Source: Guillardia theta CCMP2712
Lineage: Eukaryota > Protista > Cryptophyta
Direction: 5' to 3'
Assembly (NCBI RefSeq): GCF_000315625.1
Contig: NW_005434662.1
Coordinates: 979,855-1,039,839, forward strand
DNA length: 59,985 nucleotides
Part shown: in pieces, positions 55,585 through 59,985 of the stretch
Layout: each line of letters begins with the position of its first letter
Position numbering within the stretch: the first letter of the stretch is position 1
Program-made: the position numbers and the translations under genes
The notes under the pieces: generated by a model
What the model was told of the DNA's origin: nothing
The model's input: only the letters and a program-made list of their open reading frames with translations
Databases searched by the model: none

Positions 55585-57016
55585 TCACGAGGCAGCAGTT
55601 CGTCGACTGCGGATCACCAGGTAGGCGGTAAGAAGCGCTGCCGCAGCGCAGACTCCAACGAGGCTCAGGCTGGTCGCGGAAGGAAATGAAGTCTCGGGTG
55701 CCGGCCTAGCTTGCGGTTCTGTATCCTCAGAGGTTGGAGCAGACTTGCTTTTTGTCTTCTTTCGCTTCTTCTTCTTCTTCTTCGCTTCGGCGGAGGACGG
55801 CACCTGTTCCTCTGTCTCCTTCACCTCCTCCACCTCCTCCGGATTTGCGACTTTCGGAGCAGGCGCCACACTCTTCGCCTGCTCGTTCTTTACACGCCGG
55901 GACTGTTGGCTGCCTTGCCTGCTCCCCCTCTTCAAGTTTGACACCAGCTCGCGCGTGTTGAGCGCCGAGGCCTCTGGCATGCTGGTTGACAGGGCGTTGT
56001 CCGGCAGATCAGCCAGCCAGTCAGGCAACGGGTCGATCACCATCTTGTCTGCGTGCTCAGCGAACCTTTCCTTCCAAAGGAGAGGGACGTTGTACATATC
56101 TCGAAGTTGCAGCAGCATCTGGCGCTGAACTACGGTGTCGTACTCCAAGGTGATGGCTTCGGTGAACAGCTCACGTGCCTCCACGAAGTCCATTCGAGAC
56201 TTCCCAGCGTCACCCTGCACCACAGCTCGCGACTGCAGGGCGAGCGACAGGATGGTCAGCGCCTCGGTGCTTCGCTCGATCTCGAGACAATTTCTCAGCC
56301 GGGTTATCGCCTGCTCCACCAACTGTGTCGAGTTACCCACGTCATACTGTGAGAGCTCAAGCAGGGAACGCGCGTACGACTTGAGCAGGTTCGGGTCCTC
56401 GGGGCTCTTCTTCAGCTTCAGCTCTAGCGCAGCGTGCTGCTCCTGCACCATCTGCACGTACTCCTGCAACTGCTCCTCCTGAGTCTTCCCCTGCATCCGC
56501 TTTGCTGTTTCTTGCACATTCGCTCGCTCCTCGTACGCATTCTCCGGTGTCGCGATGACGCCAATGTGCGGGTATCGCTTTGCCCCCTTGCTGAAGCACA
56601 GCTTGCACTTGGAGAAGTACTGCTCAGCCTGCTTGTCGTCCTCCTCGTACAGGAAGTTGATGTAAAAGACACTGCCAAGCTGAAAGCAACAGTAAGCAAG
56701 CATGCAAGCGCCCGTGCACAGCTAGATCACAGCTCACCTGAAATATTGCATAGTCTCCGTTAGAGGTCATCGCATCCGGGTTGATCTTCATCGCCTTGTT
56801 GAGCTTGTCCCTCGACTCGCGCAGCATCTCCTTCTTCCTCTTTATGTCGCCCTCTGCCATTGCAAGATACGTGAGGGTACAACCCCATTCTACCAGCGCC
56901 GAATCGTTGTCGGGATCCCTCTTGTGTGCAGCCTTGCAGTAATCCACCTTTGACTTGAGAACGTTGATGTATTCCTCCTCTCCCTCCTGCATCCTTGTGC
57001 CCAATTGAGCGTTCAT
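55585..57016 (-). CDS. TOM20: Plant-type Tom20-like TPR receptor with two tandem domains and a C-terminal anchor (intron 56680-56737; 457 aa)
   Basis: Domain 1: DPDNDSALVEWGCTLTYLA..LRESRDKLNKAMKINP..AIFQLG. Domain 2: SPEDPNLLKSYARSLLELSQY..VEQAITRL. Then a poly-Lys stretch and TM LSLVGVCAAAALLTAYLVI followed by RSRR. Confidence 0.72.
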
Positions 57017-58321
57017 GTTGTCGCGCTTGTCGATTCACACGACTCTCTTATCTCATCCAACCAGTACTGCAAGCAGGTGTGAGGGAAACAACAAGGAAAC
57101 CCTTCCAACCCTTCCTCCTCTCTCTTTCTGGCGACGTAACAGCGCACTTCTACAAAACACATCTTGTTCGACAAAGTGAAACTTGCAAAACTTGTAAAAC
57201 TCAGAAACCTGGAACCTCCTCTCGACACACTCTTGTATTCACTCTTCTTCCTCGTTCTCTCATCACGGCTCGTTCTGCATCTTCATTCTCTCCTCCTCCT
57301 CTTCTTCCTCCTCTTCCTCCTCTTCGTTGCGTCCGCATTGCCTGCGATCAATGTCCCCGCATGCAGCTATAAGGACAACACCCTCTCCAACAGTTTTTTT
57401 TTATATACTACCCCACCACCTTTTGACCTCAAAAAGAATTGAAAAATAGGGGTACTTATAATCTCCTCCCTTAAATTTTTTTGAAAGCACAGTTGAACAG
57501 CGGGGATGAGGGCCTTGCATACTCAATGACCAGGGGGTTAGGGTACCTACCCCTACTTACTTTTTAAGCTTCGTACCCCCCTTGTGGACGGATACAAAGG
57601 GGTACAACGCTACTGGTGTTCTGTGTATAGTCTACTGTGGGTAGTAATGAAAGGGGGGTACGTTTCGTGGGGGTGGTGATGTCCTTCTTCAACCGTAGGG
57701 TGGGGTAGTGGCAACTTGAACCAACTGACGGCGAGTGAAATGCAGTGGTGGAGAAGAGGAAAGGAGAAGATGCTGATGCTGATGATGACGATGGCGAACA
57801 AAATGGAGGGAAATTTATGATTTACAATGTCTAGGATGATAATAGTAGTGATGATACGGCTGTGGATGATGTGTGTTGAAGAAAGACCATGGAAGAGGAA
57901 GAGGAAGTGGACTAAAAGAGAGAGGAGTGAAGTGAAGGGATGCAGACTGTGGAGCGAGGGGGATTTGTGAGGATGACACCGAAGAAAGTGATAAGTGAAG
58001 AAAGTTTCACGCAATGAACATGGGAAGAGAGAAGAATCAGACGTAGCACTGCGGGAACGTGAGTTCCCCCATGTTGAGAGGTCAACGGGTTGTGTTGGGC
58101 GCAGGTTGATGTGAAGGGGCGGTATGAGGAAGGCAAGGCACGAGTAATACGAGGCAGACGCGAGGAAAGTGGGAGACGCCGCCATGGAGTGATCTGGTAC
58201 AAGAGAGTTCGATACCTGCACAAGAGTCGATTCATTCGAGATATGTATAAGTGATCGATGCCATTGTGACTGGTTGGCTCGCAGGTTTTCCTAGCGGCGT
58301 CACTGGCAGGTTCCTGCAAAC

Positions 58322-59985
58322 ATGCAGATCTTCATTCGTAACTTGCATGGCGTTTCGCTCCCCCTCCGAGTCTGTGAGGACGACAGCATCGCGCGGGTGA
58401 AGCAGCAGCTAGAAGAGCGTGAAGAGGTATCGTGGGATGAACAGAGGCTGGTGTACAACGGATACGAACTAGAGGACGAGACCCTACTGAGCGAACTTGA
58501 GCTCGTGCCCGGCTGTACCCTCAGTCTGCACGCGTCGCTCAGAGGAGGTATGCCGAAGAAGAAGGGAGGGAAGAAGGGAGGAAAGAAGGGAGGGAAGGAG
58601 GGGAAGGGAGAGAAGGGAGCGGCGGAGGACGACGGGCTGGAGGGACAAAGCGTGGAGGAGCTGAAGGGTCAGATCCATGACATGAAGGATGGGCTGAGGA
58701 AGGAGATGGAGGAGCGAAACTACTTCCAGCTGGAGCGAGACAAGATCAACACTTTCTGGGAGATTACCAAGAAGGAGCTGGAGGAGAAGAAAGCGGAGCT
58801 GAGGAACAAGGATAGGGAAATGGAGGAGATGGAGGAGAGACATCAGGTGGAGATCAAAGTGTACAAGCAGAAGGTGAAGCACTTGCTGTACGAGCACCAG
58901 AACAGCATCACTCAGCTGAAGACGGACCTGGAGATGGCGACGAAGCTGCTGCAGGACGAGCACAGAAACAGGGAGAAGGAGCTGAAAGACGACAAGAGGA
59001 GCCTGAAGCTCGAGCTGAAGGAGCTCGAGCTTGCGCATGAAGACTTTGTGCGGAACTTGAAGGAGTCGCACGACAAGCAGATCACGCACCTCCGGTCAGA
59101 GTTCGAGCAGCAGGCGAAGGAGCTGCAGGGGAAGTACGAGAAGAAGATGAAGAATCTGCGAGAAGAGCTGGTGATGATGATGATGATGATGGGGAGGAGG
59201 AGGAACTGACAACTTGTTGCAGGAGGGGAGGAGGAAACTAGAGATTCATGAGGTGGAGGAGAGGAAGAATTTTCATATCAACGAGCTGATGAAGAAGCAT
59301 GAGAAAGCATTCGGGTAAGGGATGAAGAAGAGAGTGGAGGGAGAAGAATAATGATGGCTTTTGTTGTCCTCCTTCTCATTTTCGCACCATTCTTCTCTTT
59401 TCCATCCCTTGTCCTTGTCATTATTCGTCTTTGTTGAGAGATGCAGAGTTTGAGCAGGAAGGAGAAGTGAAGAACGATTGTTTCAATCCTGATCGACTTT
59501 TCTCCTCAGCGAGATCAAGAATTATTACAATGACATCACGCACAACAATCTGGATCTTATCAAGTCTCTCAAGGAGGAAGTTGCAGACATGAAGAAGAAG
59601 GAAGCCACAAACGAGAAGCTCATGTGACATGCTGTGTTCACAACCTTTCGTCTGCGATGACTCTGTTGTCCCCCAAGGTTTGAGATCGCACAGGAGAACA
59701 AGAGATTGTCCGAGCCACTCACAAGAGCTCTCAAGGAGGTGAGGGAGATGTGATGTGATGTGATGTGATGTGATGTGATGTGATGTGATGTGATGTGATG
59801 TGATGTGATGTGACGTGATGTGATGTGATGTGCAGTATGCACTCTCGACAGATCTGATGACAACACTTCAGGTTGAGCTTCTTCGTCACGAGTTGTCAAA
59901 CTACGACAAGGACAAACTTTCTCTCCAGGTGAGTCTGATGGCAGAAGACTTATATCCTCCCTCCTCACTTCTCCTTCCTCCCTCC
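58322..59985 (+). CDS. GAS8: Ubiquitin-like domain fused to dynein regulatory complex subunit DRC4/GAS8; continues past the window
   Basis: Residues 1-76 are MQIF...QRLVYNG..LRGG. They are followed by MPKKK.., [42 protein letters not shown] and, in a later exon, [23 protein letters not shown]. Confidence 0.92.
59746..59831. repeat. (GATGT)n intronic pentamer microsatellite
   Basis: Seen directly. Confidence 0.95.

Follow-up and report, generated by a model that had tools for sequence, protein, structure and literature searches.

A degenerate ubiquitin-like leader encoded head-to-tail with the ciliary protein DRC4 in Guillardia theta and other protists

Natural ubiquitin fusions are textbook knowledge for two ribosomal proteins (the ubiquitin-eL40 and ubiquitin-eS31 precursors) and for FUBI-eS30 (FAU), with a few lineage-specific oddities otherwise, and eukaryotic cells efficiently cut a linear ubiquitin-X fusion except where X is proline. 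FUBI itself is a fast-evolving, degenerate ubiquitin-like domain (UBL) that ends in Gly-Gly on a very basic protein, has no chain-building lysine, and presumably works in cis and is taken off by a protease. Among algae, the lineage-specific fusions described include ubiquitin-actin, -P1/P2, -NiSOD and -HMG box (Sibbald et al. 2019, PMC6332867). The flagellar N-DRC subunit DRC4 (GAS8, PF2, trypanin) has a Lys-rich N-terminus oriented to the polyglutamylated B-tubule (Kubo and Oda 2017, PMC5555654; Walton 2023, PMC10266980), and motility drops both when the charge of this N-terminus is raised and when it is lowered (PMC5555654). Chlamydomonas DRC4 carrying an N-terminal BCCP tag still rescued motility, and the N-DRC purified from Chlamydomonas brought along a “ubiquitin-like protein” (PMC4294676).

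The locus described here, at the end of a window of 59,985 nucleotides of the Guillardia theta genome, comprises the 5′ portion of a cryptophyte DRC4/GAS8 gene, the first exon of which encodes a degenerate ubiquitin head-to-tail with DRC4. Like the ubiquitin-eL40 and ubiquitin-eS31 genes, it is a single ORF with Gly-Gly set directly on a basic partner, and three further lineages (G2, G4, G5) have canonical ubiquitin joined to DRC4; however, the ribosomal fusions are universal and their ubiquitin nearly invariant, whereas the window leader is down to 38% identity and cannot contribute to the pool of ubiquitin. With the fusions of Sibbald et al. (PMC6332867) it shares a single N-terminal ubiquitin on a non-ribosomal partner, found in cryptophytes and other algae and patchy in eukaryotes, but DRC4/GAS8 is not among the partners listed there for Guillardia theta or Bigelowiella natans; the strong degeneracy of the DRC4 leader is probably why ubiquitin-based screens miss it. 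The resemblance to FUBI-eS30 extends to the degenerate leader, its Gly-Gly end, the missing chain-building lysines and the basic N-terminus of the partner, the differences being that DRC4 is an axonemal coiled-coil protein rather than a ribosomal one and that this leader arose inside cryptophytes. By analogy, the DRC4 leader may work like FUBI while not being FUBI. The DRC4 body is ordinary and highly conserved: the Lys-rich tail is present at its N-terminus, and full-length relatives have the PF13851 domain complete. DRC4 of model organisms, however, starts with Met-Pro or Met-Ala and has no leader. As the original prediction supposed, no published description of a ubiquitin-DRC4 fusion was found in a literature search, most subscription journals lying outside its reach.

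The fused reading frame and its two parts

All features lie on the + strand of the window. The ORF at 58322-59209 opens at its first in-frame ATG and cannot begin further upstream because of an in-frame TAG at 58292-58294, 30 nt 5′ of the start codon. Codons 1-76 (58322-58549, MQIF...LRGG) lead directly into Met-Pro-Lys-Lys at 58550 with neither stop nor intron between, exactly as the original prediction had read them, and the Gly76/Met77 junction (GGT ATG, 58547-58552) is the putative deubiquitinase cleavage site. The predicted basic N-terminus of DRC4 is there as well, in the form of a Lys/Gly-rich disordered tail (58550-58624) whose first 25 residues have a net charge of +8, and the remainder of exon 1 (58625-59170) encodes the conserved coiled-coil N-terminal region of DRC4 (EDDGLEG...REEL; 89-100% identity across cryptophytes). 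Intron 1 (59171-59222, GT..AG, 52 nt, with a (TGA)n run at its start), intron 2 (59317-59510, GT..AG), intron 3 (59624-59677, GT..AG, 54 nt) and intron 4 (59739-59871, containing a (GATGT)17 microsatellite at 59747-59832) separate exon 1 from exons 2 (59223-59316), 3 (59511-59623, ending in EKLM), 4 (59678-59738) and 5 (59872-59928), which were placed by alignment to Teleaulax DRC4. The gene runs past the window end (59985), and the window holds its 5′ part only.

Judged by sequence similarity, the downstream portion is DRC4/GAS8, the partner originally named: in exon 1 it is 64-80% identical to named DRC4/GAS8 proteins, and exons 2-5 align with their Teleaulax counterpart. A Pfam search of exon 1 alone gave no match in the DRC4 portion, of which the window holds the N-terminal part only; full-length relatives match PF13851 (GAS) over profile positions 1-200 (185-286 bits).

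The leader is a ubiquitin-family domain with a predicted beta-grasp fold of ubiquitin topology. It matches Pfam PF00240 over profile positions 1-72 (63.2-63.6 bits, E 2e-17; curated cut-off 25.4 bits), and aligns without gaps to ubiquitin over residues 1-76, with 29 of the 76 identical (38%). Its AlphaFold2 model (mean pLDDT 90.3) has strands at 2-6, 12-16, 41-45 and 66-71 and a helix at 23-33, in ubiquitin order, and the PDB structures closest to this model are all ubiquitin (TM 0.90-0.94, rmsd 1.0-2.0 Å). The best named matches are ubiquitin and ISG15, tied at about 47 bits; an assignment to FUBI was rejected, the leader being no nearer to FUBI than to either of these and the partner being DRC4, not eS30.

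The residue counts of the original prediction all check out: K27 is the only lysine, positions 48 and 63 are Tyr and Pro, and 15 Asp/Glu stand against 7 Lys/Arg, for a net charge of -8. Surface residues of ubiquitin are changed too (I44 to Val, V70 to His, R72 to Ser). Across the family, K29 and K63 are missing from all leaders and K48 from all cryptophyte ones, residue 72 is S, C, D or R in cryptophyte leaders, and each leader has 0-5 lysines vs. 7 in ubiquitin. This is no simple composition effect, since the adjoining tail in the same exon retains 8-15 lysines. Neither the E1-recognition residue 72 nor the acceptor lysines that characterize conjugatable modifiers such as ubiquitin and NEDD8 are kept, and with the chain-building lysines and Arg72 gone from the window leader, the freed UBL is unlikely to act as a conjugated modifier.

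Transcripts, constraint and distribution

In relatives, both parts lie on one mature mRNA (L010; MMETSP/EukProt transcripts). The mRNA contig L010, from a Rhodomonas-like species and one of 18 contigs of its kind, encodes the UBL and a complete DRC4 within a single ORF of 551 residues, does not contain the 188-nt intron seen in the genomic contig L006, and has a stop two codons 5′ of the UBL ATG. This mature mRNA begins about 85 nt 5′ of the UBL ATG and is unspliced at the UBL/DRC4 junction. The donor-like GT at the window junction, which the original prediction had flagged as a possible route to refutation, can be dismissed as a splice donor: it is not used in the relative's mRNA, and it is not conserved, the junction codons of relatives being GGC ATG, GGG ATG and GGA GCG. 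All sampled words of the UBL exon of the window are present in nine runs, classed as RNA by guess.

Evolutionarily, the leader changes fast and is nonetheless constrained. Pairwise identity among cryptophytes is 26-55% for the UBLs vs. 89-99% for DRC4, and the strength of the leader match ranges from 108 bits down to under the Pfam threshold. Synonymous sites are saturated across the 11 fusion-bearing cryptophyte lineages. Between the window and the relative L009, the UBL has 6 non-synonymous and 9 synonymous changes and no indels (omega 0.19, Fisher p 0.0015), whereas the DNA upstream of it is 84% identical with 29 gaps; omega for DRC4 is 0. The UBL is thus under purifying selection, one of the outcomes on which the original prediction had staked itself.

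Gly-Gly ends the leader in every fusion seen, Leu73 is conserved in 20 of the 23 aligned UBLs, and the residue right after Gly-Gly is M, A or G, never Pro; together, these comparative data point to selection for cutting after Gly-Gly, as had been proposed. The accompanying argument from retention of Met after Gly-Gly stands in part: Met is kept in the window gene and Pro is avoided everywhere, but two cryptophyte lineages (P0121, P0133) and all haptophyte-type fusions have Ala or Gly instead. The absence of Met there is a stronger argument for a translation start at the UBL.

The fusion was sought in related species and found in 11 of 11 plastid-bearing cryptophyte lineages, with complete fusion transcripts from Teleaulax amphioxeia and Rhodomonas abbreviata (MMETSP/EukProt), as well as in a large clade grouping with haptophytes, nearly all members of which retain the leader. 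In the three lineages G2, G4 and G5, the canonical ubiquitin sits at the same place, and a search of 50%-identity representatives, which collapses most DRC4, recovered two new ubiquitin-DRC4 lineages (P0390, P0447). Six further candidates with N-terminal offsets (P0365, P0419, P0433, P0467, P0472, P0391) were rejected as intron read-through or unrelated extensions, with no ubiquitin domain. Overall, the same junction is kept in >30 other sequences, which places the fusion far beyond chance.

Unfused DRC4 usually starts with Met-Pro (Met-Ala or Met-Gly in green algae), and the Chlamydomonas, animal, pavlovophyte and glaucophyte proteins, as well as those of Goniomonas and Palpitomonas, have a Met-Pro or Met-Ala start and no UBL leader. 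Cryptophytes with the fusion group together as a single clade in the DRC4 tree (100/99-100), adjoining the UBL-less Goniomonas; the cryptophyte leader originated inside cryptophytes and not in the eukaryotic ancestor. The same tree rejects a grouping of all fusion-bearing DRC4 in a single clade (delta lnL 122, p-AU 2e-59; 5 changes), and with it the idea that the fused genes arose only once. The fusion is seen in at least five DRC4 lineages, either through repeated hits on the same partner or through retention. Such repeated capture of one partner suggests a benefit specific to DRC4.

Proposed processing of the precursor and rival readings

Taken together, the sequence data suggest that DRC4 is probably synthesized as a precursor of the ubiquitin type, to be cut before use. 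The gene has what is expected of a fusion precursor (an N-terminal ubiquitin fold ending in Gly-Gly, no linker, one ORF), and the residue after Gly-Gly is compatible with deubiquitinase cleavage in every fusion. Translation would start at the ATG at 58322 and the 76-residue leader would fold as a ubiquitin beta-grasp; a deubiquitinase-type protease would then cut between 58549 and 58550, as in the ubiquitin-eL40, ubiquitin-eS31 and FUBI-eS30 precursors, releasing DRC4 with its Lys-rich tail, which in the axoneme would be directed to the neighbouring doublet and its polyglutamylated B-tubule. Most probably, the leader works in cis, where it could aid the production or solubility of a protein that starts with a long, basic and disordered stretch, or define precisely where this protein begins; partial neutralisation of the tail may be a further effect in cryptophytes. 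The acidic mask of the original prediction would fit cryptophytes only, the UBLs of which have net charges of -1 to -8; as a general mechanism it was rejected, haptophyte-type leaders being about neutral and the canonical ubiquitin fused to DRC4 having a net charge of 0. With the ubiquitin surfaces read by many deubiquitinases only partly kept, and positions 73-74 variable in haptophyte-type leaders (LEGG, LQGG, VVGG, LLGG), general deubiquitinases may be unable to cut, and the step may call for a specialised enzyme. As a whole, we consider removal of the leader after Gly76 by a deubiquitinase-type enzyme the best explanation and a reasonably probable one.

Alternatively, the UBL could be kept as a permanent ubiquitin-fold domain located at the N-DRC linker tip, with a possible role in partner binding or in adjusting the B-tubule contact, a reading we think unlikely. 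Permanent UBL domains normally lose Gly-Gly, yet these leaders keep it, with Pro avoided after it, although they are otherwise only 26-55% identical, and where the leader is canonical ubiquitin, as in three lineages, ordinary deubiquitinases would remove it. The degenerate deubiquitinase-recognition residues speak for retention, as does the lysine pattern: an uncut fusion that had to persist would be expected to lose K29 and K48, thereby escaping the ubiquitin-fusion-degradation pathway, and all leaders lack K29 and K63, the cryptophyte ones K48 as well. The rescue of motility by N-terminally tagged DRC4 makes a retained 8.5-kDa domain structurally conceivable, and the “ubiquitin-like protein” of the Chlamydomonas N-DRC (PMC4294676) fits with it; however, a -8 domain would shift the charge of an N-terminus at which shifts either way lower motility (PMC5555654), and no ubiquitin fold was found among the components reported in the N-DRC cryo-EM publications consulted, including PMC10266980. 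It is tempting to see the fusions as “Rosetta stones” for that co-purifying protein, with a ubiquitin fold, uncut or cut and then held non-covalently, at the DRC4 tip beside the polyglutamylated B-tubule; we regard this as distinctly unlikely, but a ubiquitin-fold subunit would then be part of the machinery that limits doublet sliding.

Cleavage might also occur with no benefit from the leader, a chance ubiquitin copy having been made harmless by cutting and locked in by loss of the internal Met. Fusion of ubiquitin to many unrelated partners in algae (PMC6332867) and the fast decay of the leader are in line with such a neutral ratchet, which also predicts selection on fold and Gly-Gly because failed cutting would be harmful. 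It accounts poorly for the same partner in at least five DRC4 lineages that do not form a single clade, for retention by every sampled cryptophyte lineage with a plastid and by almost the whole haptophyte-type clade, and for the consistently acidic cryptophyte leaders, and we give it only a small chance of being right. That the window species makes its working DRC4 from a shorter transcript or by initiating internally at Met77 (58550), with the UBL form as a minor or regulatory isoform, would agree with the Met77 of the window gene, but lineages with Ala or Gly at position 77 must start at the UBL, the relative's mRNA extends 5′ of the UBL ATG, the UBL is under purifying selection and its sampled words all occur in the nine runs guessed to be RNA, making this very improbable. 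An assembly or reading artefact joining two separate genes is hardly credible, being refuted by the recurrence of this junction in metagenome, genome and transcriptome assemblies made independently in many studies.

Implications for cilia and ubiquitin biology

A core structural protein of motile cilia is thus made behind a ubiquitin or ubiquitin-like leader in several protist lineages. At its extreme N-terminus, DRC4 has the Lys-rich tail that forms the bridge to polyglutamylated tubulin, and the production, transport or exact N-terminal chemistry of this tail may therefore profit from a leader. Degenerate leaders of this kind slip past ubiquitin-based screens and automated gene calls. For ubiquitin biology, the fusions line up as a natural series, with canonical ubiquitin at one end and, at the other, a barely recognisable leader of which just the fold and Gly-Gly are left; for cilia biology, they provide a concrete, testable candidate for a processing step in N-DRC assembly.

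Structure of the leader and its DRC4 partner

The start codon at 58322 is the first in-frame ATG downstream of a TAG at 58292, and opens a mechanically called ORF (58322-59209, + strand). Its first 76 codons (58322-58549, + strand) encode the ubiquitin-like leader (MQIF...LRGG), directly followed by Met (codon 58550), Pro-Lys-Lys and a Lys/Gly-rich tail, past which the frame enters coiled-coil sequence up to a GT donor at 59171. Translation bore out every count of the original prediction, i.e., exactly 76 codons, a single Lys (position 27) with Tyr48 and Pro63, 15 acidic vs. 7 basic residues, and passage in one frame into the Met of DRC4 (58549/58550). Aligning Teleaulax DRC4 to the DNA placed exons 2 to 5 at 59223-59316, 59511-59623, 59678-59738 and 59872-59928 (all + strand), with GT..AG introns throughout, and the gene extends past the window end. 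The mechanical ORF counts 295 residues because retention of intron 1 would read VMMMMMM and then a stop (59207-59209); a (TGA)6.7 run (59172-59191) begins one base into this intron. Intron 4 holds a (GATGT)17 microsatellite (59747-59832), and a purine-rich stretch (GA/GGA/GAT-rich, 57700-58000) lies upstream, between the DRC4 gene and a Tom20-like gene on the other strand (55585-57016).

The leader scored 63 bits against Pfam PF00240 (E 2e-17, cut-off 25.4), its residues 1-76 aligning to ubiquitin 1-76 with zero gaps and 29/76 identities. An AlphaFold2 model based on an alignment of 16 leaders (mean pLDDT 90.3) has the strand/helix order of ubiquitin and a floppy tail at 72-76, and the best 50 PDB matches by Foldseek were all ubiquitin or engineered ubiquitin variants (TM 0.87-0.94). 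Since ISG15 and ubiquitin score equally by sequence, the leader cannot be classed specifically as FUBI or NEDD8. As for the partner, this is DRC4: exon 1 shares 64-80% of its residues with named DRC4/GAS8 proteins (animals, green algae, Goniomonas, Palpitomonas, Rhodelphis), and full-length relatives contain the entire PF13851 domain.

In a relative, leader and DRC4 lie on one mRNA. This transcript (L010, one of 18 Logan contigs, ~1.8 kb, sequencing adapters at both ends) is a 99.9% match to genomic contig L006, minus a 188-nt intron, and carries leader and complete DRC4 in one 551-residue ORF, with a stop two codons upstream of the leader ATG and a 5' UTR of ~85 nt. For the window itself, indirect evidence comes from nine sequencing runs (type guessed to be RNA) that contain all sampled words of 58322-58554; across 58100-59400, which adds promoter and introns, runs reaching at least half of the words contain 0.58-0.88 of them. 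The donor-like AG/GTATG at ~58548, named originally as a possible splice site, is not conserved in relatives, which carry GGC ATG, GGG ATG or GGA GCG at the window's GGT/ATG.

Distribution of the fusion

Searches retrieved eleven distinct cryptophyte-type leaders, all with an identical point of fusion to DRC4: the window, its 97% relative L009, the database proteins P0121 (abundant in metagenomes, 45 blocks, one 139-kb contig), P0129, P0127, P0006, P0132, P0135 and P0136 (Rhodomonas salina-like), the P0131 cluster of Teleaulax amphioxeia (EukProt and MMETSP transcripts, NCBI entry), and P0133 from Rhodomonas abbreviata (MMETSP, complete). The fusion is thus present in related species, where its absence, combined with a lack of purifying selection on the leader, would have told against the original prediction. 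For P0121 (L002:4001-4981), the gene caller adds 25 in-frame codons ahead of the MQLF start; other lineages have nothing comparable, and this 5' extension is probably UTR. Among the sequences compared, DRC4 carried no leader in Goniomonas avonlea, one Goniomonas-like sequence, Palpitomonas, Rhodelphis and two glaucophytes. In DRC4 trees built with leader columns excluded, the fusion-bearing cryptophytes formed one clade (support 100/99-100) adjoining Goniomonas.

Outside cryptophytes, a large group (G3; P0138-P0153 and P0155, with 5'-cut members P0020, P0023, P0028, P0030, P0031, P0040 and P0086 still starting ...LRLRGG/APK) has degenerate, charge-neutral leaders and the junction GG/Ala-(Pro)-Lys-Lys. 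It forms a clade (support 100/98-99) with the pavlovophytes Diacronema lutheri and Pavlovales sp. CCMP2436, whose DRC4 has no leader, and this grouping most likely makes its members other haptophytes, as placed by tree rather than by named sequences. Canonical or near-canonical ubiquitin precedes DRC4 in three further protist lineages, G2 (P0134, P0137, P0142), G4 (P0447, P0508) and G5 (P0390, P0511), with junctions GG/MPKK, GG/AKK, GG/GPKK and GG/GKKK; the G2 gene of P0134 (L013:1754-3469), on a genomic contig, contains no introns and has a GC3 of 0.97. A single clade of all fusion-bearing DRC4 was rejected (AU test, delta lnL 122, p 2e-59), the grouping having been defined after a first tree was seen and G4 and G5 being long branches. 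Fusion state changed five times on the DRC4 tree, with gains indistinguishable from losses. Leader Pfam scores range from 108 bits down to sub-threshold, forming a degeneration series.

Like the original prediction, which knew of no described UBL-DRC4 fusion, we found none in the full-text literature searched, and DRC4/GAS8 is not a partner in the catalogue of ubiquitin fusions of Guillardia theta and Bigelowiella natans (Sibbald et al., 2019; PMC6332867). The fusion sequences are already public, automatically named “ubiquitin,” “hypothetical protein” or “growth arrest-specific protein 8.”

Constraint on the leader and residues at the junction

Synonymous sites are saturated between cryptophyte lineages, whose leaders are 26-55% identical to one another (vs. 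89-99% for the adjoining 110 DRC4 residues). Between the window and L009, the leader shows 6 non-synonymous and 9 synonymous differences without indels (dN 0.035, dS 0.188, omega 0.19, Fisher p 0.0015), the DRC4 part 15 differences (15/15 synonymous), and the upstream DNA 84% identity with 29 gap openings. Constraint thus acts on the leader, though far more weakly than on DRC4, and the purifying selection asked about originally was detected. Gly75-Gly76 is present in every leader sequence and Leu73 in 20/23, and Gly47, Lys27, Arg42, Leu50 and the hydrophobic core are also kept. Position 72, which E1 enzymes read, is Ser in the window leader and variable between lineages. K29 and K63 are missing from all leaders and K48 from all cryptophyte leaders, K6, K11 and K33 are mostly Arg, and 0-5 Lys remain per leader (vs. 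7 in ubiquitin); this is not a composition effect, because 8-15 Lys persist in the tail, a few codons further on.

Past Gly-Gly, the retained Met proposed originally holds in nine cryptophyte lineages and fails in P0121 (Ala) and P0133 (Gly), where DRC4 lacks a separate start codon. Where it has no leader, DRC4 usually starts Met-Pro-(Pro)-Lys-Lys, or Met-Ala or Met-Gly in green algae, and in no fusion does Pro directly follow Gly-Gly: it has either been lost or is still set off by a spacer residue. Cleavage of ubiquitin-Pro bonds is poor, and this avoidance agrees with selection for cutting, as had been argued.

Proposed processing of the fusion and its alternatives

As the best reading, we infer a ubiquitin-type precursor that would be cut past Gly76 as are Ub-eL40, Ub-eS31 and FUBI-eS30, together with an enzyme doing so and a benefit from it. 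Alternatively, the leader might be kept as a permanent ubiquitin-fold domain of DRC4, to which the Lys loss and the degenerate recognition surface of the leaders would both point, as would the tolerance of N-terminal tags on DRC4 and the “ubiquitin-like protein” co-purified with the Chlamydomonas N-DRC (PMC4294676). The latter was identified by MS/MS and not discussed further there (Oda et al., 2015), and the later structures checked do not contain it; it may be linked to ubiquitin/UBL-DRC4 fusions. The leader might also be cut yet functionless, locked in once the internal Met was lost, or, in the window species, be bypassed by internal initiation at Met77.

At its amino terminus, DRC4 is rich in Lys and sits on the surface of the B-tubule, and motility drops whether the positive charge at this end is raised or lowered (PMC5555654); flexible Lys-rich regions of DRC2, DRC4 and DRC11 face the neighboring doublet in a cryo-EM structure (PMC10266980). 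The charge mask suggested originally suits cryptophytes, with leaders of net charge -1 to -8 (in the window, -8 vs. +8 in the first 25 tail residues), but not the fusions elsewhere, whose leaders are neutral. It is plausible that the leader helps make the DRC4 tail, keeps this tail out of trouble, or sets the N-terminus.
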